DNA of 64,000 bases from Bugula neritina (lineage: Eukaryota; Animalia; Bryozoa), in contig OZ037770.1 in NCBI GenBank assembly GCA_964035545.1, forward strand, positions 6,210,729 through 6,274,728, read 5' to 3'. How positions within the stretch are numbered: the first letter of the stretch is position 1; each line of letters starts with the position of its first letter. Of this stretch, positions 933-55,900 are shown piece by piece. Both the position numbers and the translations under genes were made by a program. The notes beneath the pieces were generated by a model, which was not told the origin of the DNA, made no database searches, and saw nothing but the letters and a program-made list of their open reading frames with translations.

Positions 933-1207
933 CTCCCACCTAAAATTTAGGATGAAATTTTACTTGGTGCTTTTACTAAAACTACTAATTTACTCAATGG
1001 CCCGACGAGCCGACGGGCCTTCACTCCAGGGCATCCACGTACACCCAGTAGCAGTGTCACGGATTTCACTACTCATTTCAAGACGTTAGACTTGGCATTG
1101 ACTAGTCAAAAACCATGAGATCAATTGTGATCTAGTGTAGGTCCTAGACCTTGGTGAGCAGGAAGTGAGTGATGATGGCTAATTAGTAGCGCGGTCATCT
1201 GTGCAGA

Positions 1208-5632: not shown

Positions 5633-5660
5633 GTTGATATGCTATCCAGAGAGTCTAATT

Positions 5661-6344: not shown

Positions 6345-6868
6345 TTAAGTCGAGTGAACGCGTATATATTTTAAACACAATAATACATTATAAAAACGAT
6401 ACAAATACATCTGACAATTTACACATCTAGTCTATTCAGCACTCTAACTTCGACTGAGTTAGCAGCGGGAAACTATAATTGCTGCTAACTGTTAAACACG
6501 CTAATTGGCTATCCATTGTTCCGGGTCAATTACGCGACCCTACATGTTGTGCTGCTGGTAGCTCCACGAGCCACCACACCGCCCCCACCAGCAGAAAGCC
6601 CTCTTTCTGATATATAAAAAAACGTTCATTATTAACCACATACACCAGTAGACCAAAATAATACATAACACATATAAAGATACATAATAACAGACAGAGT
6701 CATTATAACAGCCGGTTACATACAATTGACCAGCTATAGAGGAGGAATACCGGCTAGCTGTGGTGTTAGACAAGGAGTAGGCCTGTCGAGCAGTCAAGCA
6801 TTTGCAGGACCTTCTTGGGTCTCCCAAGAGGACAAAGTTGTGGATTATTCCGGGTAGCAGAACTAGAG

Positions 6869-7690: not shown

Positions 7691-8248
7691 GTTGTCAGCT
7701 TGAATAGCTTGGCAACTCCTAATTCAGTTACCTCGTAGAGATTTATGGTAGTGAATAGTCAGATAGAACACGTATTGCAATGAGATTATAAAAATCTCTA
7801 AGTCAAACTGAGTTCTTACTACGGTATTTCACTAACCTATCTCCAGCTCGATTGACTCAGTGAGTCGGAGCTGAGTGATGCAATCTAGTTTCATATTAAG
7901 ATATAGTTAACTCACCCCACGATCTGTTGTCGTAAGACATACTGAATGTGTGAAATGGTTTGAACTACTGCTTAGAAACACGTCTACTCCTGACTGCATC
8001 AGCGTATAAAAAGATCGAGCAACGTGGTTGGGGTGCGTGATTAAGACTTTGTGCACCCGGCGGATGAATTTTGTTTCTATTTCCGCCGATACAAAAGTTG
8101 ATATTTTCGTGGTGTTGACAACTCCCACATTTGCTCGATACTTTTCTCGTACGGTTTTCCCCTAGACTTTCATACGCGCCGCTTCTATCGCAGTCGCATA
8201 CGAAGTCCTTCAAGTATGCGGGGGGTTGCCTCGTACGCTGTCCCCTTT

Positions 8249-28690: not shown

Positions 28691-31600
28691 TCACCTCTTC
28701 TTGTTCTCCTGATGGAGCCCCTCCCTCCGTGGGGTTTGCACTTCCGGAACCGGCTCGGTTTCTGGAAGTGATGGAATTAGACTTGGCGGTGGCGGACACG
28801 CTTCTGTTGACAAAAGCTGCCGCTCCTCTCTCACCAAGTTTTCTTCCCGCGGTATGACCACTTTGTATTCAGGTCCATGCCGCCGTCGCCCGCGCGTCGT
28901 TGTCTGCCTCCTGGGCTCTAACAACGGGGGGGCTTCTCCCACTCCGTCGGGGCTAGCCCAATACGGTTTCAAGCGAGACTCATTCTGGATAGACACCTGT
29001 CCTGAGCGCTCGATCTTGTACGTATGATTGGGCATAGCCTCGACGACCACGTAGGGGCCTACGAACTTAGGCTTCAGTTTATCAGCCTGTCCGCGACGCC
29101 TACGGTAATTGACCATCCACACCTTATCTCCCGTTTGATAGAGAGGTGGTTCATCGGAACCTTCGTGCCGCACCTTCCACTGCTGTTGGCGCAGTATATC
29201 GTGTGCGGCCTTCATCCGTTCCACTAGTTCACTGGCATACTCGTGAACCGAGTTGTCTTGCTCTGGAACGTGGTATGTGAGATGGTCAGGGACACGAGTC
29301 TCTCTCCCGAGCATCAAGAGGTTTGGGGTCTCACCAGTACTGGTGTGTGGGGTGCTACGGTATGCAAGCATGACCTGCGGCAACACCGTATCCCATTCCT
29401 CTTGACCTCGTCCAAGGAGGAGACTCCGGAGTGCATCACCTAGCATCCGGTTGTTGCGCTCCACCACCCCGTTACCTTGAGGGTGGTAGGGGGTGGTCCT
29501 GCTCTGATTTACTCCCCAGAGGTGGCAAAGGTCGCTCATCAGTTGAGACTGGAATTGAGCGCCTTGATCAGAGTGTATCTGTTCGGGAAGCCCAAAATAA
29601 CAGAATACATGTTGGTCTAGTGCCCTGGCCACTAGTAAAGTGGTCGGTTAGTACTAGGATCCAGTTATTGCCTCTGGGGGTCAGGGGCATGGGTCCGACC
29701 AGGTCTACAGCGACTACTTGCCAGGGCCTACCAGCGTATAGCCTCCGCCGTCCTGCTTCACCAGGGGGGCGGCTATGCTTACTGGCCTGGCAGATCTCAC
29801 ACTGTTTGACTCTGGCCAATACCACCGGAGTCATAATTTGGATATCACTCTCTTGACCCCTGCGTGGGCCTGTTTGTGAGTATCCCAAATCAACTCACGG
29901 CGTATGGCCGTGGGGCAGACTACCCTCTTCCTCTCCGGGTCTTCCTCTCCGGGTGTCTGCCGCTGGCAGCTAAGGAGATGGTTAGTAACCCATCCTGCCC
30001 GATCCGCAGCGAGTCCCAACGCTGACAGTATAGCCGGAACTCGGCGCATCCCTGTCGTATGCGTTCCTCGCTGGGTCGTCGCCCTTCCTTTTTGGCCCGG
30101 TATATGTCTGCCACGACTCCAGGCAGCTCTTCTTGGAGCTTCCTCAGCTCGCGAACATTACCGGCCAGTACACGGTTGGCGCGGAGGTTTTTCACATCCT
30201 CCGGGGACTCATCAACTCCCTGCCTGAGTTGACCCTGGTCCCAGTCAAACGGTGCTCCGTGGTGAGCCAGCGTCTCCAACTCGCATCGCGGGGGACCTCC
30301 ATCCCTCCTCTCGATGTTGAGACACTGTTTGCAACCCCCGTCAGGTCGGCGACTCAACCCATCCGCGTTGCTGTGTCTCTTGCCCGGTCGATGTTCGATC
30401 CGGTATGAGAATTCAGCTAGGATTTCGAGCCACCGGGCGACCTGACTAGAGGGCTCTGCTCTCCTGCACAACCAGATCAGCGAGGCATGATCCGTACGCA
30501 GCCGGAACTTCCTGCCGTATAGGTATGGTCTGAAGTGCTTCACTGACTTGATTACTGCCAGCAGCTCCTTGCGGGTAGTGCAGTAATTCCGTTCAGCGGG
30601 TGAGAGAGACTTGCTGTAGTAGGCTACTACTACCTCTCGGCCTTCCTGCACTTGTGACAGCACAGCGCCAACATTTTGGTCACTGGCGTCCGTGTCGAGG
30701 ATGTACTCCAGAGTGGGGTCTGGGTAGGCCAAGATGGGCGCCGTTAGTAGGCAGCCCTTGAGGCGGTCGAACGCTTCTTGCTCGACTGGGGTCCACTGCC
30801 ACGTCACTCCCTTTGCGGTGAGCCGGTTTAATGGCTGGGCTATACCCGCAAAGTCTGGTATGTATTGCCTGTAATACCCTACCAGCCTCAAGAAAGCCCG
30901 GAGTCCGGTCAAGTCTTGGGGGGCGACCCAGTCTTCTACCGCCCGTACCTTTTCGGGATCCGTTGCCACGCCATTTCGACCGACAACGTGCCCCAGGTAC
31001 TTGACCTCCGGCTGCAATAGAGCGCACTTGGAAGGTTTGAGCTTGAGACCGGCACCTCGGAGTCTCTCGAAAACCTCCTGCAGACGACTGACATGTGTCT
31101 CGAAGTCTGGAGAGATTTTGATGACATTATCGAGGTAGACCAGCAGTGTCTTCTAATGGAGTCCACTAAGGACTTGTTCCATCAGCCTCTGGAAGGTGGC
31201 TGGGGCGGAGGTTAACCCGAAGGGCAGCACCTTCCACTTCCACAAACCGTCCCGTGTGATAAACGCCGCTTTCTCTTGGGCGTCGGGACTCAGAGGAACC
31301 TGTCAATAGCCGCTTAGCAAGTCTAACGTACTGAAGTACTTGCTGCCGGCTAGGGCGTCCAATGACTCGTCAATACGAGGTAGAGGGTAGGCGTCCTGTA
31401 TGGTTACGCTATTGAGTTTGCGGTAGTCCACACAGAACCGCCAACTGCCGTCTTTCTTCCGGACCAGTACGACTGGCGAGCTCCACGCACTATGAGCGGG
31501 CTCTATCAGTCCCCGGTCCAGAAGATCCCGTACTTGTCGGCTAACCTCCTTCTCTTTCTCCGGCCCCAGCCTGCGTGTGGGCTGCCGGACAGGGACTGTC

Positions 31601-32853
31601 CCTGCAGTCAGCGGTATTTCGTGTCTGACAATTCCAGTCAGTCCCACGTCATGCTCTCCGCTGCTGAACACATCACCGTAGTCGCGTAGTAACTTAGCCA
31701 TAACTTGGCGTTTTCTGTTACTCGCGCAGCCGCCACTGGCCGTTTCGTATAAATCCCGGAGATGTGTTGGGACTGCCCCTCGTCCCTGAATAGGGTGTCG
31801 AGGGGGTGCCTCCATCGCGTCACCCAGCGACGGGCCCACGTCCTCTTCCTGGGCGGAGTGGAACCAGCCCAGCATTGACCCAGCTGGGAGCTCAATGGGC
31901 TCGGTAAAGGGGTTGACACACTGCACTAAGACCTCCCCTCGCTCAGTTAGTCGGTTTAAACTACTGGTGAGTTGGATCCTTTCGTGCGCGCCTTCAACGA
32001 CCCCGAGCCTGGCTATCCGGTTGCTGTTCACTCCGCAGTGGATAGTAGCTCTGGAGCGTCCGGGTACGGTGCAGTTTCGAACTACCTGAACACCGCCCAC
32101 CAGAGGACGCCCAAACTTATCCACACAGGTGAGTTCTCGCCCGCCCATCAGCACCACCGACTTACTAAAATCTATTCGGCACTGGTGTTGCTTCAAGAAG
32201 GGCATTCCGAGGATAGCATCTTCCTCCAGTTGACCTATGATAAAGGTCTCCTGTACAGCCTGATCTCGGACACGCCCAGGGAGCTCGATAATACCATAAA
32301 AGGGAATACATGACCCGTCTGCCAGGGTGCCATGTTTCCCAGTATACGGTCGTACTCTATCCCTGTCCCGGCGGGGCAGTGCCTCAAAGACTCTACGACT
32401 GAGAAGGTTGGTAGTACAACCGGAGTCGAGCAGGAAAGTGACGGCGTTGCCGGCCACCTTTCCGGGTAGGAAATAGCTCTCTCCATGTGGTTGTACTTTC
32501 ACCCCCCCCGCATGTGCTGTCCTGGATTGACAGGACGGCGGGGGTTTCACCCGTGGTTTACGGGGCTTCCGGCGGCGAGGTTGGTGCCGGCGGGGTTTGG
32601 GGCTCTCCACTGGGCCTTCTGGCTCCATTTCAGTGGCGGGCTCCTCTTCCCGAGGTAACCGGTGAAACCGGTTAGCGAGCGGCAGGGAGAAGGTACTTGG
32701 CCGTTGTGCGGGCCTACTAGTCCTGCGTGGTACCTGCCACTCGGGTGGAGTGTTCCGTCGTGTCCGTATGGACAGACGACGGCGTGTTCCACCATACTCC
32801 TTCAGTTGCGGCCCGCGGGGAGGGAGAGTGTCCGCGGGCCGTGACAGTTTAAC
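28691..32853 (-). pseudogene. Element C pol: protease, RT, RNase H and integrase, disrupted
   Basis: ORFs 31303-32628 (LLDSG), 29920-31017 and 28691-29632; premature stops in RT, small deletions and a 14-bp duplication in the integrase region. Confidence 0.92.
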
Positions 32854-34008: not shown

Positions 34009-36004
34009 GTATACTGAATGTAGGATAGTGAGATAGTTGTCTCCCCCAATGCATTTTCCTGCAATCACCAGCTAGAAAATTTGGAACAAGATATACAACT
34101 CAATGATTATTACAATGTGAATATATTATCATTATTACTATCATTAACTGACCCAGAAATGAAATCCAAAAACTAATTTTAGATGTGAGAAGAAAACTCT
34201 ACAGCTCAAGCAATAGACAGCGCATGACTTCTTGGCAACGCGAGTATTCCCTTTTCTTTTGCGTTTCCGGCTCACTTCCTAGCTTGAGCAGATCGTTACA
34301 AAATTGCTAACTTGTTACACCCACCATTCCTCATTATCGTAATTTCATTAAAGTTTTGCTAAGTTACTAGCTATAGTAACATGTAATAAAACAATTAGGC
34401 TACATAATTATTTCTAAATTGTGATCATATCTAGCGCCACGTACTCGTTTTGATTGTCAGTCAATGTTTTCTTTAAGTTAAAATTCAACTTAAAGTTTTA
34501 TGACTATCGGTATCACTATCACTATGCGTTTATCATTATCCATTATGATTATGGGTTCTGACTATAACTATAAGTATATCAATATGATTATGATTGTCAC
34601 TATAGTTTAGATTGCCATCATAATGACAATCATTTTCGTTATGATAATCACTTTTACCTTGTCAATATATCTATGAATATTAATATGGCATTATCATTGA
34701 GATGCACATAATTTTAAATGTAATGATAACCATTAACTTTAAGTTAAGGTCATATACCTATAGTTATAGTGATATCTATCAAATGATAGTGATAATATGT
34801 TTTTTTATTATCATAACGTGTCAATAGCAGAACCATCAATGATTTCCATTAAAGTATTTATCTGTTTAATAATTAGTGCTGCTATAACTATAAATTAGTA
34901 GTACTAATCGTAAATTTAATGATAATTTCATGCAAATTTCAATACGAATATGGGCGTATAGTAATTTTATGTTAATCCTAATCCTTATCATAAATCCATG
35001 ATTGTAATTATAATGTAATACACAATTTAAATATAATTGTGAATTATCAAAAGCAATATGAATATGATATTTTGTGATATTTTGATGTGATCTCTGTAGT
35101 AGTATGCATTGCAATAGTATTTTTTGATGCTGATAATGATTAATGACTATTGCTATGCCAATGATTAGCTTTACTATTTATATATTTTATATATAATCAC
35201 TATGCTAATTACTTTATAGTTGATCTGCACAACTGCAGTAATAACAGTGACAGCCATTATCAAATATGATTAATAGTTGTGACGAAGTTACACCATGGCA
35301 TTAACAATCAATTTGATATTATTGTTAAATAGACTTTTGGCTAACTTGAAAGTTTGGATTAAAGTCCTCTAGGGCAATCTCTTTACATTCCTCCTAGTAG
35401 TCAAGCCTTACAAGTAGTTGAATGTTTTTAAGGCATTCAGCAAACCACATCTGGTTAACTAGCCGCTAGCCTATGAAATACTACAAATCACCCCATTTTA
35501 CAAATAGCAAATTATAAATAATCTGATAATTTTCTAGCATGATGTAATGCTGCTGAAAGTAAACTTTTTGGTTTTTAAACAGTGTTTACAATATTACTTT
35601 GTTTACTTCTAATGTGGAAAATATTACTTCATTAATAGCTAATTTGTAAAATATTGTCCTTTTATATAATATACTGAAGGGAATGCTCAATCCACATGTT
35701 TGTTTAAACTGTATGTATCTGTCACAGAAAAATTCAATTTAAATAGGTTCTATTTGCATAAATTAATTACTAGTCAGCTATATTTGCTAGGCTCACTCAT
35801 TACATACTTGGACTGTTTTTGTGTTCATGTTTCGCTTTTTTCAGAGATAATCCTGTTATTTTTATAGATGAATGTATGTGTTTGGATGTGAAATAAGATG
35901 TCAAATCTGCTGCTTTAGCTTCCAACTGGTGGATCTCTGGGTAAGTGTATTTAAACTATTTATTCAACTACTGACTTGACTGATTATCACTGTGAATAGT
36001 TAGT

Positions 36005-36200
36005 ACTAATAGTCTACCTTGCATTAATAGTCTACCTTACACTAATATTCTACCTTACACTAATATTCTACCTTACACTAATATTCTACCTTGCACTAAT
36101 AGTCTACCTTACACTAATATTCTACCTTACACTAATAGTCTACCTTACACTAATATTCTACCTTGCACTAATATTCTACCTTACACTAATAATCTACTTT
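36005..36200. repeat. Minisatellite, 18-bp unit ACTAATA(T/G)TCTACCTT(A/G)C
   Basis: About 10 tandem copies. Confidence 0.88.
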
Positions 36201-37634
36201 GCATTGGTTTAGGTGACTGGAAAACACAGGTATTCCAGTAGTTGTGTAGGTATCTTCACCTCACTGTCATCACTCTAAACCCTCTTTTAGTAATCGTCTC
36301 TTCCCAGCAGTGAACATATATTAAGAGTAGAAATAGTAAAACTAGGTAAGTCTCTAATCAATACTACAGAATAGGGGATACAGACTACAAGTCTCTGTGT
36401 ATGTAACCTTGTTATATAATGATTCAAATTAGGTATAGCAGTGCATAAGTATGCTGAAGGGTATCATCTTTTATAGTTGGTTTAGCATGGGACAATGGCA
36501 GACCAACTGTGATAGTTTCTGTAGCTTTTCTTTCTTCATAATCAGTATGAGTGATGATCTCAAACTCCACGCTATTGGCTCTCTACAATTATTTCTCTAC
36601 AACAGAGTTTCTATAAATAGCTAATTCATGTTTGGTGTCATTCCACACAAGTCGCTATGCTAGCTTGACAAAACAGGAAAAATGCTTCTACCTATATGAA
36701 AAAAATAAAGAGTGTAGCTATAAATTGTATGTTTTATTGAGCTCAAATAAATGCAAAATATTTAATTTGAAAAAAGTGAACATAAGCTACTAGGCCACAT
36801 GTTTCAATAGCACTGCAGCTAGTAGAGGTCAGTAATCTTGTAGAGTTAGTCATGAGTGGTGGGATTTCTGCTTTTTAATTGTTTTTCACATCTCCTTAGA
36901 CTGCATAGCCTGTTTTATAGTCATGTTGTAGTGTTTGGTTTATTTATATAAGAGTTTGTAAATTGCTGGATGATATTATTTAATATAGCTTTGCTGCGTA
37001 ATAATTCTGCCTCTGAAGAATTGTTGAATGCAGTTTTTGATTCTGCTGTTACATTATTATAACTATCTGGCTTGTGGGAAGATAAATATTTTAAGAAGTC
37101 CTTTGAGATGAGTTCGTCTCATACCCCAAACTGTGTCAAGTTGAATGAAAACTGTTATTATAGTCAGCTTAAGTAAAAAACTATTCAATTTTTAAGCATT
37201 TGAATTAAAAGAATACCTTTATTAGCATTGATTATATACTCATATGTCATAAAATTTATAAGTATTTGAGAAAGTTGTCAAATGTTCTGATTCAAATTTG
37301 TTCACCTGGTGTGCTGTTTAGCCAGATCTGGACTCTTTTATGGGAATATCAGTTGAGTTTACAAAGGGTGAAAATAGCAATTAATCATATTCTACTACTT
37401 TATATTTAATAGCTGCGTACACCTATTTCAGGAAGTTGTGAAACATTTGATGATCTGGTGTATTGCTTATCCAGATATTCAATACATTTAGAAATATTAA
37501 TGTACTCTAAGAATATAATGAAGTTGATGAGTAATCATATTATTTTACTTCATATTTAATATCTGTTTTAGATGGAACTGCTACATTTTAGCTAAAACTT
37601 ATTACCAAGAAAGACAATCCACCATTTGGTAACT

Positions 37635-40600
37635 ATGGCTACTGGTGGTGAGTGAATTCAACAACTACTTTATTCAATTGTTTCTGGACAATAAAAATAT
37701 TCCAATACTGATAATAGGATGTAAATTATTATAATTGTATAATTGTGATTATTATATTTAGTCAACACTGCACAGGCTTCTCATATATGAGTAATACATC
37801 AAACTGTAGTTTTAGATGTAAAACTAATGTAAGATTATTATTTTGTAAGTTTTGGATTTTACATCAAATACTAATGTGAAGAACATGCATATGTTTGGTT
37901 GTATCCATCACTATTCATTGTTATCTTCATATGTATGTAATGTTTGTATGTCCAAATCTTTACTAAATGTATGTGAACCTTACAGTATGAAAGATACAGA
38001 TAAGTAAATGTAGATGTTATGTCAATACAATTTAAAGGATACTGATTAACACATTATCACTACATCCTATAGGCTACTTGTTAAGTCAACAAACAAACTA
38101 ATGCTTTGAAAAATTATATAAGATGTAAAATAATGCAAGCAGCTTGGTTAGATTTGTCTTATTGCAAAGTGATCAACACTGCTCTAGAAATTATACATAA
38201 AATGACTGATTATGAAGAGTCTAAAGCTACTCATTAAAATATGTGTAATTTAGTTATAGATATGAATATACACATCAACCATGTAATAAATATATTCAAA
38301 CCGTTGATGACAGGTGTCAGAATGATAGACACCACCTGCTAGCACTGTGTAATAATCACACTATCACTGTATTATGTTACAGAGAATATGAGAATCTTGT
38401 TTAGACATTCTGGACAGCCTCCTGTGAACTGGTGGAACATACAGTCTGCTAATACCAAATTGTATACTACTGCTGAGGTGAAATGTGAAGTTGGGAGTTA
38501 TGATATCACAGATCTGAAACTGGTAGGGAAACTTCCAAGTAACATTGGAGAGATTGCTGGTAAAGCCCTCTCTCTACGTGTTTATAACCTGACTGACAGG
38601 GCAAGTCTAGACAAGTGAGTGTCTATTAAAATAGCTGTGTGAATGTTAAATGAGTTTAGTTGTTTATTAAATAATAACCTATAATAGATGCTGAAGCTGT
38701 AGCATCCTTTTGCTGATAACATATTTATACAATATAATATACATAAAAATAAGGACATGTGCAACATTGTAACTATATACCAAGTAAGCTGGTTGTAGTA
38801 ATTAGAGGGTTTAAAGCTGCCTGTATACTGCTAGTTGATAGCATTAAATAAATCATGTTTTATGTAGCTGAAAACTGAAGTAATTCACAGTTTATAGTAG
38901 TATAGAAAAGGCTACTTTATGTCATAAACTACAAATATATTACATTAGAATTTAGTCATCAGATTAACTTACTTAGCGTGCAGAATGGGGCCTCATGTAC
39001 TGTAAGCTAACAGCTAACCTTGCATAATGAAGCTTTCTCTCCTCACCTACGACATAACTACAAAAACTCTTTGCTGTTCTATGCAACAATAAGTGTGTTT
39101 CTTGCATGTTTTACCTGGTTTGAATACACAAGAAATATATACAGTATATAATATATATTATCCTTATGCAGTAGACTAGATGTATCACACACTTTATATT
39201 ACAGTCTATGTAAGCTGACTCAGTTAGAGAAACTAGTCATAGGAGGAAATCCTCTCAACACAGTACCAGAAGTTGTGTCATCACTCACATCACTTAAAGA
39301 GTTGAATATGTGGAACTGTAGATTATCTACTCTACCTGAGAGGTTTGTGTGTCACAGTTTCAGTATTGTTTCAATCACTCAATAATTTACATATGTATAT
39401 GTGACCTCCCACCACAAAACAGGGAACGTTGGTCAGTTTTTCAAAATTGAGTTATTAATATAAAGTTAAAGAGCAGATCTTTGCAATCATTTTGCAATTT
39501 ATTTGAAGTCTCTAGTGCAGATAGAACTCGAGATATTGATATTCAAAAGCCTTGGCGTTTTTAAAACAATCAATTTACGTTTTTGAGAAATTCGCTTTTA
39601 AAGTAAGGAGGTCTGGAATAATTTATGGATTATTTGTTTACATTTGTCAAGCCTTAACAACGGGCCTTTTTATTCTAGCAAACTGGACAAATTTGGTATC
39701 AAAACATTTGTTCAAGTATGGGCTTTCAGCTCAACCAGTTTTTACGTTTCCCAAACAAAAAATTAGGTCAAAGATGGCCGCCAAACTTGTTGTAACTTTA
39801 TTTTCCCCGAATAGCTATTAAATTGTGATAACAGTTGAAAATTTTGCTACTTTCAGCACATATAAGGACCTTTAAGCACTTTTTTGCACCGACATTCATT
39901 TGAACCAACTATGCTAACTAGGTGTCGTATGAAACAAAATGGCAGCCATTTCCTGTTTTACGTTTGCTATTTCCCTCATTATTAATATCTCATGTAACAT
40001 GTCCAACTGTAGCTATTGAGCCATGCCATTCGATAGTATCAATTGTTTCATGCGTAAAAATCATATGAGAGAATCATTCAACTATTATGATATTATACAA
40101 AATTTATTCAGTCATACAGTTACAATGTAGAGTGATCAAAAGTTACACATAGGGAATCAGTTGAGATATTGAGTATCCATACAAGAAAATAAAGTATAAT
40201 TTATTTTTAATCTTCAAATCAATTATTATAAACAGATAAAAGTGTAGAAATTCAGCATAAATGAAACTTAAATTAATTCATATAGCAGAAAGACTGCTTA
40301 GGCCTCAGGTGATTCTTATGGTCTCTGAATCTTTGTCCTTGTTCTTCATAGCGTGAGTTTACAGAGTATAAGCACATAACCAAGAGTTTAATTGCTGCTA
40401 CAAACGATATTCCAGTAGTCAAAGTTAATAGATGCTGCTACTATAAATCTACCCTGTTCATCTATAGCCACTTAGACCTGCAATTATAATATTAAACTTA
40501 TTTTTAGATAATAAAAGAGAACAACAGTGCATTAGAAATTAAATCTGGCTATAAAATGTAATTGTTTTAACACCATTTAACTACTATATTACAGCAGCTA

Positions 40601-43600
40601 ATAATTATTGAGCAATTTCTCAACATTTAAGTTTATAGCGAGTTTGAAGGCACATTTGCAAACTAGTTATTTATAAAATTTTTGAGCATAATGAAATACT
40701 AGACACCTTTTTTCGAGTAAAGTTAGCAGAAGCTATAAGCTTGCAAGCGGTAGCTCTCCAAATGCAGGGAGTCCGGATCACAAGTGTAAGAATGATAGGT
40801 TATATGCAGCATGCTCTTGAGCTGTATAGGCGACATACCAAACAGCACCTCATCGACAAGTTCCATCATGTTGCCCTCACATCTTCACTTTCCTAAAATG
40901 AAAATAATGTTATATTCTTGAATAATAATCATGATGTAGTAATAATAATATTTTCTTTTCCTATTGCCATCAAAAATTAAGTCATTTGAATATTTAGCAT
41001 GTTTGAATCTGCAGTACTAAAGCAATGAGCTTGTATTTGAAAAATAAAACAACTAACTAATCAATATACTATTTAACATTCAATTCAAAGTGAGTAGACA
41101 GAGCTAGCCAAGTAGCAACAAAACCTACTAAATATAGCTACTGCAAAACCAATTTCAATTCAATTATTTACTTAAATATAAATAAATATAATAAATAAAT
41201 CAGCATAAGTAGTTGTAGTACTCCAATTCTATTTTGAAACTGGAAAGTCTTGCATGATAAAAGTGATGTATTCTAATAGTCATAGATAACTATAAGATTT
41301 AAACTAAGGGTAGCTGTAAGTGTTAGGCTGACAGTGACTAACAACAAGTGACTTGACTTTGACATCATTATTATTGTTTCACTCTTAAGGATCTTAATCA
41401 CTGTTATTATGAATATTATTATTATACTTGAACTTATTCAAATTGAATCACATTCGATATTTCAGTATGAGTATAGATTATGTTAAATATTCATATTCAA
41501 TATAAAAGTGGCGCTCCGCTGACTGTGGACCACTTAACATGCCCAGACTTAAAATTTCTATAAATAATCAATATGAAAATGAACATTTAATACTATGAAC
41601 TTCAAGTTAATGATAATAATAATATAATATTCAATAAGATTATCACAAGAACTAACTGAAAGAATTACTAATTGTATTAGTGTAATACTGAACCCTATTT
41701 AATAGTATTATCAATGTAAGTATGAGCATTTAATTTTGAATAAAAATAAAACACTCAATACTAAAAATTTCTAGTTAAAAATATCATTTTTTTAGCACCA
41801 GCTGTTAAAAATGAAAGTCAAGAAAGCATTTGACCTACATAGGCTAGAGTAAATCACTAAATCAAAATGAAAATGTAATACTATTATTATTTATTAATAC
41901 AAATAACGTAATAAGTATATAACTCGGATTGATTGATATTTTAATCATGATTATTAATATTATTATTAAATTCAAAAACTACAGCATTAGAAGTAGAAGT
42001 ATAACTTTAACTATAAGTATAAGTTAATAACTACTAGTAAATTATATAATTATTTAGTAGCGTAAATGAGCTATTTTCAGTATAATTACCTGCTTTGTAG
42101 TGATTTAATCATAAAGTCCAAAGATAAAGATCAATATTAAACTACAGCTAAGGAAATTAGTTGCGTTAAAAGCTAACTTAATCTTTGCAGCCAGCGCCAA
42201 AAATAGCTAATACTAAACTTAGTTTCAGAAGTAGGCTTCCTATCATGCGAGGAGAATGCAAGAGCTACCTTTATTAAACAAAGAATTATTTGTAGGATTC
42301 CGCGCTATGAAATGTTTTAATTTCATTTTCGTAATAGTAATGATAACTCCGAGTCAACTTGACTACGATCCGCCATTTCGAAGAAATATTTAATGCATAG
42401 TTACCAACTTTAGAGTTGATTTTGAGGCTGAAGGAATTAGCAATTGCTTGCGAAAATATGATATTTGAAATCCTTGAGTTTTTCTGTATAAGAAAATTTT
42501 AAAATTTGAAAACTGGCAAAAAATTTCAATTTTTGGTTTTTCAAAATTTAACCTTCATTTACTACACTTCATGAATGCCGCCAAGTTTCCGGTTTTGTCG
42601 CGAGGGGTCACATATGCTCACTGAATGGTGTTTATTAAACTTTTGCTCCAACTGGGATTTGAACCCAAGACCTCCAGCTTGCAAGCAGGCACACTAATCA
42701 TTACACCATGGGGCACTGGGTAAACTCAACACTACAGTGTTGATGTATCCTAACATATGTTGCCTTGCTAAAAACCATATTTTTGAGGTTATCTATAGTA
42801 GTTATAAGTCATAATCTGTAAATGACATAATTTGATGGCATGTCACAGCATATTATTATGCTTTAAAAAATTATGGTAATTATTGAAACAGTCTTTTAAT
42901 AGTAAAACTAGCTATTGCATGCTTCATAGCTTTATGCCTTGATTGCTTTAACTATCTGTTGCCCAACCAAATTGGTTTTTATAAAATATTTGGTTGAATA
43001 CACAAGCAATGTGTACAATATATTATATTATTATGATGCAGTAGACTAGATATATCACACACTTTATATTACAGTCTATGTCAGCTGACTCAGTTAGAGA
43101 CACTAGACATAGGATATAATCCCCTCAACACAGTACCAGAAGTTGTGTCATCACTCACATCACTCAAAGAGTTGCATATGTGGAACTGTGAATTATCTAC
43201 TCTACCTGAGAGGTTTGTGTGTCACAGGTTTTGTATTGTTTCTAGCATTCAATAATTTACATCTTCAAAATAACTTGGTTACAACAAAACTCTTTAAGCT
43301 GATTGTTCTGTATTCAGTTCCTTTTTTTCTGGGTGGCTTTTATAGTGTATGTGAAAGTTTAATGGTTTATTGAAAAATGATTGGAGTTCTAAATTATATT
43401 TAGTAGTTTTGTAAGTGTACTAGTGTCATGGTATGCTTTCCTTGTTTCAAAAACTCAGACATTCTTATATTTATATGCTTAAAAAGTAATATTAAAGTAT
43501 ATTATATTATATATTGCTGCGGTTAAAAATATAAAGTAAATTTTTCAAAGCCATGTAATAGTTTGTTATATCCTTGAGTAACACAGCTGTAAGCTATGGT

Positions 43601-46600
43601 ATTATATAGCATTCTATAGTAAACAGTTTTGTATTTAATAATGAAACGACCTCTTGTGGTGTCTTGTAACAGTAAGTGGATTACTTGAATTTTTTACCTG
43701 GTTTGAATACACAAAAAATGTATACAGTGTATATATTATCCTGATACAGTGGATTGCATATATCACACACTTTATATTACAGTCTGTGTCAGCTGACTCA
43801 GTTAGAGAAACTAGTCATAGGATGGAATCCTCTCAAAACTGTACCAGAAGTTTTGTCATCACTCACATCACTTAGAGAGTTGAATATGGGGAGCTGTGAA
43901 TTATCTACTCTGCCTGAGAGGTTTGTGTTTCTCAGACTTTGTATTGTTTAAAAATTCAGTAATTCACATATTTATGTGCATGCTAAATAATTTCAAATAG
44001 TACCCCATTATATATTACTAGGTTAAAATATAAAGGTATATAATCTGAAGTTTTTTTGAAGTTACATGTGTATTATAATCTCTCACATCTTGAAAATAAC
44101 ATAGTTTTAGAATTTGTCATAAAATATATATGAAAACCTTCATAATTTATAATAAAGCAGCCATTTATAGTGTATTAGTATTTATTTACTGTTGAATCCT
44201 CATTAGCTCTCTTGATTTATTAGCTCTGCATTTGAAATTTGCATTGCTGCCTAAACTTTATTCCTTGTTTGAATGCACAAGCAGCATATATATACAGTAT
44301 ATATTATTATAATACAGTAGACTACATTGTGCTAGTATTCACTACAAGTCAATGCAAAGGTTTGACAACACTGATTCTCTTTATTGATGACATGAAACAA
44401 GTACCCTGTTGAATAAAACATAAATTTTAATACTCAGGGTCACATGATCTATGATAAACTATAATATAAAAAAGTTGCAGTAACAGAAAGCAGGCACACA
44501 GAGTAATAATATTGTTTTTATGTATTATGTAATGACTATAATAATATTTACTTACAAATTTATTACCCTCTATTATAGTGTTACTAGCATGTAAATTATA
44601 TTATTTAAACCTGCAGGTACAAAAAAGACATATATAAATGAATTATATAATGTAGTCATATTATTACATCAACACTGTATATAAGATAAAATGACAAAAT
44701 CAATTATACCCATCATATTATATGTGGTACAAAACATGGTAACATACAGTTATGTTGAGATATGTCAGACTTTGCCTTTCATTACTAATGGCTAAAGAGT
44801 TGTGGGCTAAGGAACTTGTTGACTATCTGCTGTGTACACTCCTACTGACTGGCTTAGGTTAACAATATATTTTGTGATCAGTTACAGTATATTTGTCAAC
44901 TAATCCAAAGGTCAATTAACCAGTGTATAATGATACATAAATATATCACACAATTAATATGACAGTACCCTCACCTATTGCCTTTATGACTTGCTTGGGT
45001 AGTGGGTGGCTGCCAGAGGCCTACCTTAAATAAACTTTTCTACATAACTCTATCCTGAGGGTCTTCTTCATTGAAAAAACAGAATTGGTTATCTTTCCTG
45101 ATTGCGTCCTGCTGACTATGCTATGAGCATCTCGATTTCTCTTTACTCTAACTCTCATCACATGTACTCTTCTCAGGTCATCTCTCTTCTATATATATAT
45201 GTGTAAATACTGCCTAATTCTCTCGCTGGTTTTGCCATCTTTAAGACTGGTTCTCGCCTACGCTATGCTAAATCTTTCAGCAAGGTAATCGGTCAATGGC
45301 CATGTTTACACTCTATACAGTAGAACTAGTCATATTACTGTCTTGTGTATATATAAGCATCTTTACTTTCTTTCAAACTTAATTGTCAGCTCTCTTCATT
45401 TCTCCTTTATTGTCACATATTACCCCAGTCAGTTCTCTCCATTTATCCTAGGTGTTGCCAATGCGCACCTGTACCTCTACATTCTGCTTCCTGGTGAATT
45501 GTATTCTCCAGGTATTTGAATGTGGTATTTTGAATCAAAGTTGAATGTTCAAGTCTATCATATTCCATTATTTTGATATCATCGCTGCTTTTTCTGGTGA
45601 TAGGTACACAGTTTTATACCTGCTGACTTTTAGGCCGGCATCCTCTAATATCCTTTTCCAGTCTTCCAACACTTATTCTGCGATTTCTCTTCTCCCATCA
45701 CACAACACCAATTTACATACAGTATATATAATATGATGATTGTGGCTTATATCTGCTTGTTTTCTGTAGCTACCATAAGGCTGATTGCTAGATAATTGAA
45801 AGTGTTTCATATGAGCTTACTATAGTCACTATCACACAATACTATTTTGCTTAATTATTGTATACCAACTACCTCTAGTTTATGCTGGTAATAGAAATAT
45901 AATATTTTATTAGGATGCAGAGTCTACAGGAGCTACAGACACTAGACATAAATGGAAATAACTTCTCCAGATTACCATCTTCAGTGTGCAGATTGAGTAA
46001 TCTGCACACACTGGATATATCCAACAACAAATTCATGACAGCCTTGAACCCTGAGATACTACAGCTAACACGTCTTCACAGACTGAATACAGATAGTTGC
46101 AATGCTCTTACATCTCCTCCACTAGAAGTTCGTTGGAGAGGATTAGATGCTGTGCGACAATACTACACAGATTTGGCTAAGGGCACTGGTAGAAACTTGC
46201 CATTTGCTACAATAGCAGTGTTAGGGAACACCATGGCAGGTAAAACCAGTCTGATCAGAACATTACAGAGCACTGACAGGAAGAGAGTTCTGACTAAGAG
46301 AAGTTCGAATGCAGAGTATGATGAGACTACAAAGGTGTTTAATGTGGAAGAGGTGGAGGTGGATGGTACAACTCTTTGTCTCATAGATATGGGAGGCCAG
46401 GAGGTCTACCATATTACATACCATTTGACACTGAGACAAAATTGTGTACCGGTAATTGTAGTCAACATGGAGCAGTATGATCAGATTTCGAAAGCGTCTA
46501 CAGACAGAGAGGCTGTGAGAGAGTTGGCCTTTGACTTCGTCTCTCACCTCTATCTCGCTCATCCATCTCTTGGCCCACCTAAACTTGTCTTCACACACAA

Positions 46601-49600
46601 AGATAAGTTTCAAAATGAGAAGTGTCAACAAATAAAAGACGACTTTCTTAGAGTATCTGATGAACTGTGCAAAGAAATTCTTGATGAAGAGAAAGGCTCA
46701 GATGGGGAATTTGTGAAAATTCAGCATTTCAATTCATCGAATGGAAAGGTTTTTGCCAGTGAAGATATATATCAGATCGGAAAGGAAGACGACTATGCTG
46801 AGTACGACTTGATAAAGAGCTCCCTTCTAGAGAGCAGTCAGCATTTTGTTAAGCCTTTGCCTTTGATATGGGAAAAAGTGAATGAAAAAGTTTTGTCTTT
46901 ACCTGGAGCATTTTGCTCCTTTTGGTTTATTCTGCTTGTGTTAAAAAAAGACAGCTTTGAACTGAAGCCAAGCCAGCTAGATACTATTCTCACATACATG
47001 CATGACTGCGGCAAAGTATTGTGGTACAAGAAAATTGATGCACTCAGGCCATACATCTTTCACAAGATTTCTGAAGTAACCAAACTGTTGTGTGTTTTGT
47101 ATCACCATGACCCAAAAATTTGGCAGAGTCGGGTTGATCAGTTCAAATCATATCATTCCATAGAAGGAGTCAGGATTGAAAAGCAAGACTTTGAAAAATC
47201 TGTCAATTGCTTCAAGACTAGTGGCATGATGATGCAACCTCTTCTAACATATTTGATTGCGGACGAAACTTCCTTCAATAGTTCTGGTGATGTTGAAATT
47301 GCTGTTTCATTGCTCAGAACATTTCGTTTGCTGTATGGTCCTTTGGAAAATGATGCTAAGGTATCATACTACATTGTTCCACAGTTTGCCAAGGAGCTAT
47401 ATTGTACTCCCTACACATCATCGAAAGACCTGTTACTTGTTGCTGAGACACAGTTTAATGGTCTGGCATTACCACAGCATGTCTACCACCAAATGACTGT
47501 GGGTTTGCTAGAACTGTTTCCAGAAGAGTTTGCTGTGAGAAGGGTAAAGAATAATGGCGTTAATGTTTACCAAGATCAAATATACACACAGCTGATACAT
47601 GACTGCAAAGCAAGAAGAGTCTTACTCTATGTGTCATCTGATGCTGCTCACATTTCCAGGATGTGGGAGAAACTCATTTCAACCAACAACAACATCCTCA
47701 GACATGTGATGGAAACTTGGACTGCTAGTCGACCAGTCACTGCCTGCTTCTGTGCTCACTGCGTCACGCTTGGGGTTTCTTGCCCTGAAAAAATAATTCG
47801 TCCTAATTGGTGTTTTCGCTCCTTAAGCAACCCATCACCAGATGTAAAGAAGTGTAGTGGATCTTCAACAACATTGTGTAACAATGAGGAAGTGCCCAGT
47901 GCTTTAATCTACCCATGTATGTTAATTCAGAAATATTTTTACTCATACTTTTTTTTCATAAAACATCAATGCAGTTTTAAATGTTGAAAGTATACAAGGC
48001 CAATTAGAGAAGTTAGTTTAAATTATGCACTCCTAATTCGAGTTCATCAAAACTATACTAAACAACAAACATTGCCTAATAACGTTTACAAATATTTTAA
48101 CAGTTTAAACTATTCATTTAAAACCTGGATTTCTAAAATATATATATATGTCATATCCTTTAGTTGAGTCAATATTAAGATTTGGTAGTAAAACCTATCT
48201 AGTTATAGTTAAAGTGAAGGTTGTGAGGTAATTTATCTAATCAGTTTTATTCAGGTGAGGCGTTGTCAGAAACAGAAATTCAGAAGTTGGAGACGCTGTT
48301 GGTAAAGCTCAAACTACGCAGAATAGAGCAGAAACACTTTACTGGTAAACTTCTACAGTAGTTAATTCTTAGCTTCTTTTTTCTGGATAGAGTTTTGTTT
48401 GAGAAAAAAACAAATGACTTGAAGAAACTGTTTATTAAATTCAAACGACTGCATGAATAGTATAGAAAGTTTGATCATGTAAACTTCTTCGACGAGCTTT
48501 GCAAAGCCATTTCTGACAAAATCTAATGTTTATTTGTATGCAATGAACAAATTTCTTGTGTTTGTCAAATATTGACAATAAAATCTTGTGACTGCAGAGG
48601 TTGATGATCTAAGTGATCTCTCTGATGACGATGAAGTTTTACAGACTGGTGAAGAGAAGGACAAGGATATGAAGTTGATAAAACTCAAGTTAAAGCCAAC
48701 CAGCAACCTAAAGATTAAACAACTCTTTCCAAATACTGTCAAGGTTGTTATATCAGTTAATAACCGTTTTAGCCATGATGGTTTGGCCACTCAATACACT
48801 ATAGTGGTATAATTATTCCTTTATTCCCACAGCTTGATAATAAGAATACCTGAATGTAGAATACGTGCTTTCTTTACAAAGTATAAGTTTTATTGTAATA
48901 TAATTTGATAATTTTGTGCTTTGGAGAAATTGGCTCATAACATTTATTTAGTGAAATTTCATGTCACCACTGTACATGGTATTCTAAACATTCTTGCCTC
49001 CAGGTGTTCAATATGACCAGAAACAGAGGAAAAGCTCTGATCATAAACAACAAGAATTTTGTTGAAAGACCAGACTTATGCAGGGAAGGTTCAGATGCTG
49101 ATGTTGAGAACATGTCTGTCATGTTGAAATCTCTCAAGTTTGATGTTGAGACACACACAGACCTAAAGGCAGAGGTATAATATTTTAGAATGACAGCAAT
49201 AGTAGTGAACTATATACATGGTAGCATGCTATTTCTTTAAAGAAGTAAAAATGCTTTTTGTGTGAAACTGTATTCAAACTTTTAGGGTCAAGCTTTTTCT
49301 TCAGTATTTGCTTAACTTACACACTGTCCTAATATTACTTAAGGTTTGCTAAAATGGGTGCACATTTTGGCATACTTGCTTGTGAGTCAATATTTATAGT
49401 TATCAATAGTCATACTAATAGAAGTGAATGCTCTCATTTACCTGTATGGTTATTATTACTTACACAGCTCAACTTGGCTGACGTATTAGCTTTTCAACTG
49501 AAAATACCTATTACTATTGAAACAAGATTTAGCAACCTCCTAATATTGTCAAGTTGCAGTTATGCTATAAATGGCTGATGGGCCAGGATTATATAAAAAA

Positions 49601-50999
49601 AATGCAGCACTTCTTAGAGATATAATAACATTTTATAAAATAAATGTAGGAAATGCTGTCTGCTGTGAAGTCCGAGATAAAAAATGAAAGAAACAACGGC
49701 TTGGGCTGTCACATGCTGGTAGTCATGAGTCACGGTGAAGAAGATAACTGCATCTATGGAACTGACCTTGAGAAGGTCAATCTTACAGACTTGTATGATT
49801 TACTCGCTCCTCTAAGTCTAAAGCGTAAACCTACAGTTGTCATCCTAGAAGCTTGCAGTGGAGGTAATTACAGCGTTTTATAGAAAATGTTCATTTTTAG
49901 TTGAGTTGTGGAAGTAAGACAAAGATCCTTGAAAAGCGCTCTCTGTACTGATTGAATTCCTTTTTTGCTCAAGATGCAAGCCTAAAAAAATTTTTGTTGC
50001 AGCAAACATTGAGGTGAATCCAGACAGATCTGGTCTTGCAGCAGCTCAAGAAGAAGAAACTGAATCTGTCTCTTCTACACATTCTGAATCTGATGATGAT
50101 ATTGTATATCCTGAAACACCCAGTGTAATAAGACCCATCAGACCTGTCTTACCACCAGCACCTAGAATAGAAGAGCGGTGGACCAGACTGGATGTTGATA
50201 ATCTTCTTGTTCTAAAGAGTAGCGTCTGCTGTACGTATACTAAATAGTGATTAGCTAGTTTTACATGTGCACAGTTGCAGTTATTTAGAAAATTGTCTCT
50301 CCTTAATCCAATCTTGTAAACTTGTCTTTAAAAAGTATATCAAACAAAGACTTTTAAAATATACTGAGCTTGCTTTCATTACACCATAATTTTGGCTGCA
50401 TTTAATTTTATTGTAGCATCAAAGAGACATCCTGAATATGGATCTCCTATGATTAGAGCTCTCGTATCTTCAATCTACAAACATGCCTGTCACCGTGATC
50501 TCTACACCATCTTCATGCAGGTAAGTCTAGAATGATAATTTTGCTGATTTCTGGTTTCATACAAAAATATTTCTTTTATTTCAGCTGTTTATTATTCATA
50601 TTTTTTGATTGACATTTTTCTATCAGCCTGTTGTGAAGGTTTACAGACTGTCTTAGTCTCACTGCAATGATATACCTTATATTTTTAACTGTAGCAGACA
50701 ACTCTCAAGATTTTGCTGCTTAGATTTGATACAAATAAGACGGTATATTCCAGCAGCTTAGAGTTGTAAATATTTATCTCATCTGGAAGTATATTCGTAC
50801 ACAATCTTACTAGTCATTACTTGCTCTACAGGTACAGACTAAACTAGTGAAGAAACTATATGCAGATGAAGATTCAGAGAGAAGCAGAAATTTGGTTGTA
50901 ATCTGGAAGACTCTTCCTCCCCGTAAAAGACTTTACCTGTTTCCTGGCTTTGATGGGTTTGGTGAAGAGGAAAAACCCAGTAGAGAGGATCATTCCTAA
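37635..50999 (+). CDS. LRR-Roc-COR-like-caspase fusion protein (Roco family GTPase with C-terminal peptidase C14), about 1260 aa
   Basis: Exons 37635-37647, 38383-38614, 39205-39342, 43075-43212, 43783-43920, 45914-47916, 48255-48344, 48598-48743, 49004-49174, 49650-49863, 50003-50230, 50417-50520 and 50832-50999; all GT-AG with compatible phases, total 3783 nt. Roc motifs GNTMAGKTS, DMGGQ, FTHKD; caspase motifs RGKALIINNKNF, REGSDAD, MSHG, LEACSG, SKRH...GS, KRLYLFPG. Confidence 0.88.
39205..39342 (+). repeat. LRR exon cassette 1 (138 nt, two 23-aa LRRs, phase 2-2)
   Basis: LCKLTQLEKLVIGGNPLNTVPEVVSSLTSLKELNMWNCRLSTLPE; AG/GT bounded. Confidence 0.92.
39397..42615. mobile_element. Putative non-autonomous DNA transposon with imperfect TIRs, in an LRR intron
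   Basis: Left end ATATGTGACCTCCCACCACAAAACAGGGAAC vs reverse complement of the right end ATATGTGACCCCTCGCGACAAAACCGGAAAC; no intact ORF. Confidence 0.65.
42644..42714 (-). other. tRNA-derived SINE head or tRNA pseudogene
   Basis: Minus strand has A-box-like TGGTGTAATGA and B-box GGTTCAAATCC; the anticodon arm is non-canonical. Confidence 0.6.
43075..43212 (+). repeat. LRR exon cassette 2 (138 nt, phase 2-2)
   Basis: LCQLTQLETLDIGYNPLNTVPEVVSSLTSLKELHMWNCELSTLPE. Confidence 0.92.
43783..43920 (+). repeat. LRR exon cassette 3 (138 nt, phase 2-2)
   Basis: LCQLTQLEKLVIGWNPLKTVPEVLSSLTSLRELNMGSCELSTLPE. Confidence 0.92.
44985..45715 (-). mobile_element. Degenerate 5'-truncated RTE-clade LINE fragment
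   Basis: Minus-strand peptides FKYL.., VQVRI...KWRELTGVICD and KTVI..VLLY...TWPL, typical of the region after the RTE reverse transcriptase. Confidence 0.65.
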
Positions 51000-52971: not shown

Positions 52972-55900
52972 TCAGTCACCTTCCAGAGATACTTCTACAA
53001 CAGAGTATGAGTATATATTACAGTGTGAGATGTACTTTACAATATGATATGTATATTATATAGATAGTGTATACTTAGTATCATATATACTGTATACTTA
53101 GTATCATATATACTATATACTTAGTATTATATATACTGTATACTTAGTATTATATATACTGTATACTTAGTATCATATATACTGTATACTTAGTATCATA
53201 TATATACTGTATACTTAGTATCATATATATACTGTATACTTAGTATCATATATACTGTATACTTAGTATCATATATACTGTATACTTAGTATCATATATA
53301 CTATATACATAGTATCATATATACTGTATACTTAGTATCATATATACTGTATACTTAGTATCATATATACTGTATACTTAGTGTCATATATACTGTATAC
53401 ACAGTAACATATATACTATATACATAGTATCATATATACTGTATACATAGCATTACATCAGAGGCTGATATATATCTTACCATACCTGAAACTTGAGGCG
53501 GATAATGTAGTCCAAGGTCTAATTGAACACCTTCAGTAGGAAGGGCAGGCTCATGAACCTCCTCCATTTTACTAAATTCAGCTGGAGAGATGTGGGCTAC
53601 GCTGCCATCTAAAGTATTAATACATAAATATTTCCTAGTTCATGATCTACTAATAAGAGTTGTGTCCCTTCAGCAGTTACATACGTCAACCTCAATATCA
53701 GGGAGCAGTCTCACTAAAAGCCTGGCCTCACCATTGTGAGAATCACATGAAATCGTCTACTTGACACAAAAACATCCGTACGAGAAAATCTGAGGGAATT
53801 CAAACGAAATCGTCCTCGTTGGCTGTACACACCGATGACTATGGACAAAAAATCACAATAGAGGATAAGTACCACTTGATTGTTCAATAGAATTTTAGCA
53901 ACAATAATTATTTCATTTCTACAACTTTTCTCTATTTGGTAATTTCCTGCTGTTTTTACCTTGCGCAAAACTCATTCACGGACTATTTATTATGTGTTTT
54001 GTCTGACGAGAGTGCGGCTCGTCATAACGAGAGGATAACTCACAAAAAACGTCACCTGATTTCGTTTGATTCTCCGTTCGCAAGGCCAGGCTTTAAAACT
54101 TTTACAGTTTTACTGCAATGTGAAATTGCAACTACACTATAGACTTGTTCTTTTAGTGAATAACGGGATTTATATCCTAGCTGCCACTTTGGCATTGCTC
54201 AGTAGCCAAAACCACAAATATATGCTTTGAGGTTTATTTTTCGAATGTTATCCTGAACCAGTAGTTTTTTGAAATGCTAATTTAAGCTTGGCATCAGCAA
54301 TATGTCTATCACCAAATTGAAAAGGTGTATAGCATTGTTGCATATTGCATGTAAAGCAGTCAAACTGTAAATTTCAGTTGAAGCATGTACCTGCTAATGG
54401 GGCACAACTCTTGATTGTAAATTGACATCGCAAACATACATTGTAGGAAAGGAGTATATCATATATAAATACTTTCTTGACTGTTAAATGGATAAGTTGA
54501 TGAATGTGTTATATATATATTCAAATAACTGATAGAGTTGTGAAGATATAAACAGTAGGAAGAAGAAGTAAAATTAGACCAGCAGGTAATGTAATGCAGT
54601 AAACCAAAAAATAATTCTGAACATATTCTCTAAGATAATTACCAGATACTTGTTGGGAGGTTTCCTCCACATCCCCGCCTTCTGACTTCTCAATTGCAAC
54701 CTCAACTACAGTGTCCTGTATGCTGTTGTGTAACATATTAGAGTTGAGTCTGGCTAACAGAGCTGCTGTCTCGGGAGTAAGAGCTGAGCTGGTGTGGATG
54801 CTGCCATCTGACAGCTGTGTCTTCACCCTTGAGATCATGTGACCTGGGAGAGAAATCATGCGACCTGGTAGAGAGAGATCATGTGACTTCATAGAGAGCA
54901 ATCATGTGATCTGGGAAAGAGAGATCATGTGACTGATTGATACTAACCTGACTCTTGACCTTCATGAGCGAGTGTAACTGTCACAGTCTCTAGATGGGGG
55001 CCTATATGTGACGCCCAGTCTTCAGTCCATACTCGATCCTGCTCTAATGCTAAAGTATCCACACTGCCCTACGAAGTAATTTATATACATAGTTACTATG
55101 TGTGCACATAAAAATAACTTCAAAAAACAGACATGCTTTTTAGTGCTAATTTGCCAGCAAGTGCAGATTGCTGAAGTCACATGCTGTCTAAAACAGTAGC
55201 GCTGACACGGCACCACCAGCCAACCACGAGAAATCTTCTAACCTAATTACCAATCGCAGTAGGTTTATCATTTAAGTTCCAATCGCAGAAAAAAAAATAA
55301 TGACGGCACAAGGTGAACATAGTCTCATAGCTGTCAATGCGACATGCATGAAATAGTATAAAGGCGTAGCCAATCATGAGAAATCATATTATCTACTTGC
55401 CCATCACAGAAACTGTTACAATTTCACAAACAACACCACATGTATAGCAGTACCTCTTTGAGAGGCAGCACGCCACTATCAATATCACGGAGAGCTGTGT
55501 GGATGTGATTCTTCAGATCGCTGACAGTCGGGAAGAAACTCAAGTCATGTCTCACTGGAGGCTCCTCATTACTGAACAAATCTTTCTCCACGTATTTCCT
55601 GTATGAGAATATCAGGTGGTGTGAGTGTGGCTCAGTAGCTTTGATATTTTGATCTTATAGATGGTAGGCTATACAAGTGTTAAATAGCCTCTCGCTCTTT
55701 AACACTTTTAAAATACTCTAACGTCATCAGACAACTGAACGGTAAGGCAGTTTCAAAATGAAACACAACAAACATGTTTAAAACAATTGTGACAAAAACC
55801 AACAACACTCAAGTTTTTATAATACAAAATGTCCGGCAAATTATTCTACTAGAAGTATTTATGAGACAATGTTGTAGCCCTAATACTGATAGAAAGCGTT

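Follow-up and report, generated by a model that had tools for sequence, protein, structure and literature searches.

Why does a gene carry several exons of exactly the same length that are nearly copies of one another? The question is raised by a 64,000-nucleotide (nt) stretch of the genome of the bryozoan Bugula neritina (GenBank assembly GCA_964035545.1, contig OZ037770.1, forward-strand positions 6,210,729 to 6,274,728), hereafter the window, in which three 138-nt exons encoding leucine-rich repeats (LRRs) lie upstream from exons for a Roc GTPase and a caspase. The genome assembly comprises 216,009,554 bases and the window corresponds to C6:6210729-6274728; positions without a prefix are counted from the first letter of the window. 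We consider it probable that the gene belongs to a large tandem family of LRR-Roc-caspase genes, and that its three exons make up an LRR array that is encoded in the germline and evolves fast.

We examined the three exons, or cassettes, first. Cassettes A (39205-39342), B (43075-43212), and C (43783-43920) lie on the + strand, measure exactly 138 nt each, and encode two 23-residue LRRs apiece. They are in phase 2 at both ends: the first base finishes a codon and the last two bases open the next. Pairwise identities were 127/138 (A-B, 92.0%), 125/138 (A-C, 90.6%), and 123/138 (B-C, 89.1%). Pfam searches, done exon by exon, matched cassette A to PF12799 (LRR_4) at 29.7 bits (cutoff 27). The similarity extends into the introns, and alignments of exon plus flank covered 273 nt at 89.7% identity (E 2e-102) and 298 nt at 85.6% (E 6e-96). 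The flank common to A, B, and C runs from about −120 to −1 upstream (sequence ...TATATTACAG) and from +1 to about +55 downstream (sequence GTTTGTGT); around cassette A it occupies 39085-39204 and 39343-39397 (both +), and its upstream part is common to all cassettes. A fourth unit has decayed: at 44263-44411 (+), a recognizable upstream flank (78% identical over 68 nt) precedes an exon with an in-frame stop.

The junctions on either side of the cassettes are also in phase 2: the preceding exon (E1) has its last base at 38614, and the following exon (E5) begins at 45914. The reading frame is thus kept with any number of cassettes. An earlier, sequence-only reading of this DNA had described three phase 2-2 exons of 138 nt and ~90% identity whose loss or gain would be frame-neutral, and both points hold: the exons are in the same places, and the junctions of the neighboring exons have the matching phase. 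It had also described a conserved upstream flank of roughly 90 nt and a common donor sequence. That flank is real, but its actual extent is ~120 nt upstream and ~55 nt downstream.

How widespread are such cassettes? Searching the genome with a cassette and its flanks returned 372 first-look candidates, and all of the scored matches (42/42) were 79–91% identical over ~300 nt and arranged in tandem. An invariant 29-nt core of the exon, allowing up to three mismatches, occurred 335 times in the genome versus 0 times for a reversed control; these matches concentrate on C6, C1, and C7. Related cassettes are therefore abundant outside the window. The Roc-bearing exon E5 gave 168 candidates, and the 64 that were scored all matched at E≤1e-267 with 59–92% identity, which corresponds to at least 64 paralogs.

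We then sampled ~250 kb of the genome in 10-kb pieces and recovered 127 cassettes, 125 of which were not cut by the end of a piece. Nearly all of the uncut cassettes (121/125) were intact, with a length of 138 nt, AG/GT borders, and an open frame, and the LRR motif LxxLxLxx(N/C)xL was visible in 121/121 intact cassettes. Of the other four, one is a 129-nt variant that stays in frame, one is 139 nt long with a frameshift, one has a GC donor, and one is truncated. Inactivated LRR exons thus occur in the window, as the relic at 44263-44411, and in other arrays, as the frameshifted and truncated copies. The arrays held 2, 3, 5, 5, 6, 7, 7, 8, 10, and at least 11–14 cassettes, the counts being lower bounds for arrays cut by the ends of the pieces, and cassette spacing was mostly 558–600 nt. 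Exons homologous to E1 sit upstream of every sampled array (these matches were used for position only). Judged from its predicted exons, the window gene is a member of a family with the modular design E1-(138-nt LRR cassette)n-LRR-Roc-caspase.

Two further observations concern the family at large. A second large cassette cluster lies at C1:32.78-33.07 Mb; its core differs by one base (CCAGATGTT versus CCAGAAGTT) and its Roc (Roc-COR) exons are ~65% identical to that of the window, which makes it a distinct subfamily. The closest paralogs of the window Roc exon (91–92% identical) are at C6:5541224-5543275, C6:5478739-5480790, and C6:6175125-6177188, with one or two stops inside the match. These stops could mean that some recent copies are pseudogenes, or they could fall at the ends of exons.

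How do the arrays change? We compared the window gene with three recent paralogs on C6: P2 (5482358-5486385), P5a (5543314-5549315), and P5b (5406961-5413443). Whole introns of the window gene matched introns of these paralogs position by position at 92–97% identity. The 589-nt E1-A intron is 96.6% identical to the first intron of P2. The 570-nt B-C intron is 94.6% identical to the sole internal intron of P2 and 93.7% identical to the last internal intron of P5a, and the C-E5 intron is 95.8% identical to its P5a counterpart over ~1 kb. The 3′ part of the A-B intron is 93.3% identical to one P5a intron and 86–87% identical to two further P5a introns. Despite these near-identical introns, the cassette number is 3 in the window gene, 2 in P2, 5 in P5a, and 5 in P5b, as predicted if arrays change by unequal recombination or tandem duplication.

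The order of the units varies as well. We typed cassette units by their flanks alone, which assigned A to type G (a first-position type), B to type K, and C to type J (a last-position type). The order is then G-K-J in the window, G-J in P2, G-K-K-K-J in P5a, and G-G-g-J-f in P5b; elsewhere, examples are HEBEBDI, HCBAAACBLBE, MRANMAANMRANI, and SOSOPTOPTj. The ends of the arrays (first and last unit) keep their position, and number and order vary in the middle, so neither is fixed across paralogs. Within arrays, some duplicate units are identical or differ by <2%. For 75 of 120 cassettes the nearest relative is in another array, often at a non-colinear position. As read from these comparisons, change of the arrays by tandem duplication or germline unequal recombination of exon-plus-intron units is well supported. 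Variety had been attributed to unequal recombination or to alternative splicing; the paralog counts (2, 3, 5, 5) bear out the first; the second is not supported, as the joints that look like skipping could not be assigned to the window gene (see below).

Two loci on C6 hold repeated cassette units. At L035 (C6:4850000-4859999), adjacent cassette units within 5286-5991 are identical over 318 nt, and at L037 (C6:5034000-5043999), a ~5-kb block with several cassettes is repeated within 556-8991 (C6:5034555). Such repeats could have arisen by duplication in the very recent past or, alternatively, through the assembly of long repetitive sequence.

We next asked which residues vary between cassettes. 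The consensus peptide is LCQLTQLEKLxIxxNPLNTVPEVVSSLTSLKELxMxxCxLSTLPE, and entropy peaks at codons 11, 13, 14, 34, 36, 37, and 39, which are x positions of the LxxLxLxx(N/C)xL motif. In known LRR structures, these positions face the concave binding surface. The seven hypervariable residues form 105 distinct strings among 120 cassettes. We fixed 12 x positions a priori from the LRR motif, to avoid circularity, and found a ratio of nonsynonymous to synonymous divergence (dN/dS) of 1.38 (bootstrap 1.22–1.53) at these positions versus 0.43 at the other 33 codons. A ratio of 1.7–1.8 (pN/pS) at codons chosen by entropy was set aside as circular and replaced by this measure. In orthologous cassettes of the recent paralogs, nonsynonymous and synonymous codon differences numbered 9:1, 9:2, 6:2, and 7:0. 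Between the window gene and P2, cassettes differ by 11.6% and introns by 4.5% (Fisher p 1e-5); between the window gene and P5a, the values are 6.9% and 5.3%, which is not significant. Thus, these sequence patterns most likely reflect diversifying selection on the predicted binding face, for new binding specificities.

We also measured divergence outward from the exon in 120 units. Synonymous divergence of the framework codons (pS) was 0.119 within and 0.123 between arrays. In the upstream flank, nucleotide divergence was 0.19 within and 0.20 between arrays at −20 to −1, and 0.22 and 0.25 at −40 to −21; in the downstream flank, at +9 to +45, it was 0.23 and 0.27. Beyond −40 upstream and +45 downstream, divergence rose to 0.33–0.39. 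The flanks therefore diverge 1.5–3 times more than framework synonymous sites.

Are the cassettes transcribed? The RNA data were Logan contigs of runs guessed to be RNA (the runs include a "symbiont metagenome"), placed on 38350-44349. Over this interval, the contigs cover E1, A, B, C, and little else. GT..AG joints fell exactly at the predicted exon borders, and cassette-to-cassette joints were present in three runs. Thus, cassettes of the family are transcribed and spliced to one another.

In the mechanism that we propose, the duplicating unit would be a cassette exon plus its intron, and the near-identical units would, by duplicating in tandem and by recombining unequally with one another through homology, make arrays grow, shrink, and reorder. 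Each such event would stay in frame, given the common length of 138 nt and the 2-2 phase. Scaffold residues would be held nearly invariant, even at their synonymous sites, with solvent-exposed β-strand positions being diversified. The shared flanks would be what is left of an ancestral intron of ~190–205 nt, and longer introns would have been made by insertions such as short interspersed elements (SINEs) and a DNA element. The products could act as receptors in immunity or allorecognition, with a caspase output.

Several points count against this interpretation. The arrays compared are all paralogs within one genome assembly. The dN/dS values come from pairwise counts, which are blind to recombination and shared ancestry, and whole-exon dN/dS of orthologous cassettes exceeds 1 in most pairs with pooled tests that are non-significant. 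Synonymous sites of the framework have diverged less than the intron next to them, a difference that cannot be explained by simple recent duplication. The model assumes that the cassettes are included constitutively, and RNA joints also map from E1 to B and from E1 to C (three runs) and from A to C (two runs), joints for which paralogs can account.

The higher conservation of silent framework sites relative to the adjacent intron suggests exon-centered gene conversion or selection on exon nucleotides. The similarity of exons and near flanks might accordingly be upheld mainly by ongoing exon-centered gene conversion within and between genes, and not by recent duplication. The gradient of divergence (exon pS 0.12, near flank 0.2, outer flank 0.35) has the form expected of such a process, within-array divergence equals between-array divergence (0.119 versus 0.123), and nearest neighbors are often in other genes. 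Orthologous cassettes of the recent paralogs, moreover, differ in clustered multi-nucleotide patches that recur in other cassettes. However, the hypervariable codons remain diverse (105 strings in 120 cassettes), the flank types remain discrete and linked to their exons, and much of the similarity is already accounted for by block duplicates and by whole introns that are homologous position by position. We regard gene conversion as the main force as possible, if doubtful.

The sequence-only reading had described the flanks as conserved, and selection might keep them as splicing-control elements, of a selector type or for exon definition. Conservation climbs toward the exon, reaching 80–99% consensus among 120 units in the last 50 nt upstream, at +1 to +8, and at +25 to +45, and long arrays of near-identical splice sites may need strong exon definition. 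Yet the flanks are less conserved than silent exon sites (0.19–0.27 near the exon and 0.33–0.39 farther out, versus 0.12), so no function beyond ordinary splice signals is needed. In the shortest introns of the family (187–205 nt), the downstream flank of one cassette runs almost without a gap into the upstream flank of the next, and longer family introns hold additional sequence between the two. The flanks thus look like the remnant of an ancestral short intron. Flank types, moreover, form 44 clusters that travel with the exon as a unit. Docking/selector pairing was not found: flanks paired with each other or with the E1-A intron gave duplex energies no better than those of shuffled sequences (z −1.2 to +0.3). 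By their divergence and their match to a short intron, the flanks are not a special conserved element, and we judge selection for splicing control to be unlikely.

Could the cassettes instead be alternatively or combinatorially spliced, so that one gene gives many LRR arms, as in NLRP3 skipping (PMC6642158) or the ROCO isoforms of Ectocarpus (PMC11378527)? Skipping would be frame-neutral since every cassette is phase 2-2, and an E1-to-A joint is absent among the listed RNA joints, in which the E1-to-B, E1-to-C, and A-to-C joints appear. However, the contigs that bear joints are only 45–100 nt long with a shorter side of 18–28 nt, and 208 of 569 fit two places. Some joints contain inserted letters that match the E1 ends and cassettes of paralogs, and contigs derived from paralogs demonstrably map to the window. 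The E1 ends of paralogs are 1 nt in 25 off that of the window, and in P2 and P5a the start of the first cassette is the same as that of window cassette C; their normal junction between E1 and the first cassette would therefore map here as skipping. We rejected the apparent skipping joints as evidence of alternative splicing on these grounds. The absence of complementarity between flanks speaks against it as well, and variable splicing of the array strikes us as decidedly improbable.

A bolder version, in which LRR-Roc-caspase receptors would differ from cell to cell, zooid to zooid, or colony to colony through stochastic or regulated skipping or through somatic change of the arrays, in the manner of Dscam or VLR, is very unlikely; such receptors would possibly be self/non-self (fusion/rejection) or symbiont-control determinants wired directly to a caspase. 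The view that the units are no real exons, but belong to a mobile element or a tandem repeat without coding function or stem from faulty assembly, is effectively refuted: they do stand in tandem with a period of ~560–710 nt and some copies are identical, but 121/125 copies keep exact length, frame, and AG/GT, the units match an LRR family in Pfam and always lie between E1 and Roc-bearing exons, RNA contigs join them at the predicted sites, and their substitutions are codon-aware.

We turn to the introns of the window gene and what has inserted in them. The B-C intron (43213-43782, +) is of the J type and resembles the P2 and P5a introns. The segment at 42612-43074 (+), which holds the body of the K-type intron and the flank that precedes cassette B, is 93% identical to one P5a intron and 86–87% identical to two further ones. 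Between A and B lies an insertion of ~3.2 kb (39398-42614, no strand assigned) that is missing from the homologous P5a intron and accounts for the A-B spacing of 3870 nt. Its inverted ends, of ~30 nt, are imperfect (TGTGACC...ACAAAAC.GGAAAC), and it is possibly flanked by a TA target duplication. RNA-type contigs cover parts of the insertion at high summed depth, so other copies of it are probably transcribed. The K-type intron also contains a SINE-like repeat (42631-42736) with a tRNA-like head at 42644-42714 on the − strand, which matched the tRNA family of Rfam at 23.9 bits (E 0.014), short of the gathering score. This repeat has 825 first-look candidates over all large contigs and was duplicated along with the K-type cassette unit in P5a. 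A true tRNA at 42644-42714 was rejected, as ARAGORN found none in the window, the Rfam score is sub-threshold, and the segment is part of a dispersed repeat. The window holds other repeats: three copies of a multi-kilobase repeat (8300-12100, 15900-19100, and 28700-32400; 61–98% identical by segment) and minisatellites at 35969-36239, 22257-22440, and 52985-53507 (11, 6, and 17 copies), whose periods are 18 nt and 23 nt.

The remainder of the gene is laid out as follows. E1 (38388-38614, +) is the first coding exon; it opens with an ATG, and its phase-2 end is followed by GTGAGT. E5 (45914-47984, +) is a large exon with a phase-2 acceptor that carries the terminal LRRs, the Roc GTPase domain, and the region where a COR domain is expected. 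The Roc domain (PF08477) scored 29.9 bits (cutoff 27) at residues 100–192 of E5. No Pfam COR match was found in E5 at E≤0.01, and ~490 residues follow Roc there. Three + strand exons spanning 48941-50532 (48941-49177, 49650-49880, and 50368-50532) encode the caspase domain; Pfam matched PF00656 (Peptidase_C14) at 39.9 and 30.4 bits (cutoff 21.4). Their predicted translations contain SHG and ACSGG motifs, which would provide the catalytic His and Cys.

If our interpretation is true, this lophotrochozoan has a repertoire of receptors that numbers at least 64 genes and comprises at least 335 cassettes. An LRR sensor, a Roc switch, and a caspase output, combined with diversification by two-LRR cassette exons, array turnover, and a hypervariable concave face, would be a parallel to the R genes of plants, the ROCOs of brown algae, and the NLRs of vertebrates, and the bryozoan architecture and mode of diversification were probably assembled independently of these systems. 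The family would then offer a tractable case for how modular exon design promotes receptor evolution. It would also be a candidate for immunity, symbiont control, or allorecognition in bryozoans.

How does the family compare with known systems? A literature search found no description of a bryozoan LRR-Roc-caspase family, which is not proof of absence. The donor cassettes of lamprey and hagfish VLR genes share with it an invariant LRR scaffold, a hypervariable concave face, and a large number of genomic cassettes. VLR donor cassettes, however, have no splice sites, and the germline gene is incomplete until they are copied into it somatically. The cassettes described here are ordinary in-frame exons of complete genes, with AG/GT borders, and we rejected a VLR-type arrangement. 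Arthropod Dscam is similar in that tandemly duplicated cassette exons of the same phase diversify a recognition surface. In Dscam, exactly one exon per cluster is chosen via docking/selector pairing, whereas here cassettes are joined to one another in RNA in three runs and flank duplexes had z-scores between −1.2 and +0.3; we rejected mutual exclusion of the Dscam type on both counts. Plant NLR and receptor-like R-gene clusters are alike in their birth-and-death evolution, in unequal crossing-over that changes LRR number, and in diversifying selection at xxLxLxx. Their LRRs lie mostly inside large exons and are combined with other signaling domains; here there is one cassette exon per repeat pair.

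The closest precedents are the LRR exons of brown-alga ROCO genes and of vertebrate NLRP3. Human NLRP3 has exons of exactly 171 bp with two LRRs each, and one of these exons is alternatively spliced (PMC6642158). The LRR exons of NLRP3, other NLRs, and ribonuclease inhibitor resemble the cassettes in their exact constant length, in encoding two LRRs per exon, and in having the border at the same place in each repeat, which makes in-frame exon loss possible. NLRP3 and its relatives are unlike the bryozoan genes in exon length (171 bp), in repeats of 28/29 residues, and in carrying NACHT instead of Roc, and their copy number is largely fixed, without a comparable hypervariable pattern or family-wide array turnover. 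For brown algae, the precedent named by the sequence-only reading proved sound. ROCO genes of Ectocarpus and Saccharina encode one LRR per 72-bp phase-2 exon; splice variants are documented, the exons are shuffled, inactivated copies of them persist in introns, the concave face is under positive selection, and the genes have been proposed as immune receptors (PMC3341825, PMC11378527). Brown-alga and bryozoan genes thus share phase-2 LRR exons of constant length, repeat numbers that vary between paralogs, relic exons, and selection on the concave face. The differences are that the algal unit is 72 bp with one LRR and its splicing is documented, whereas the unit described here is 138 nt with two LRRs, in an animal, with a caspase downstream. 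Relative to its closest precedents, the bryozoan family has a unit of its own size (138 nt, with two LRRs of 23 residues) and stands apart by its lineage, its caspase output, and the extent to which its arrays turn over.

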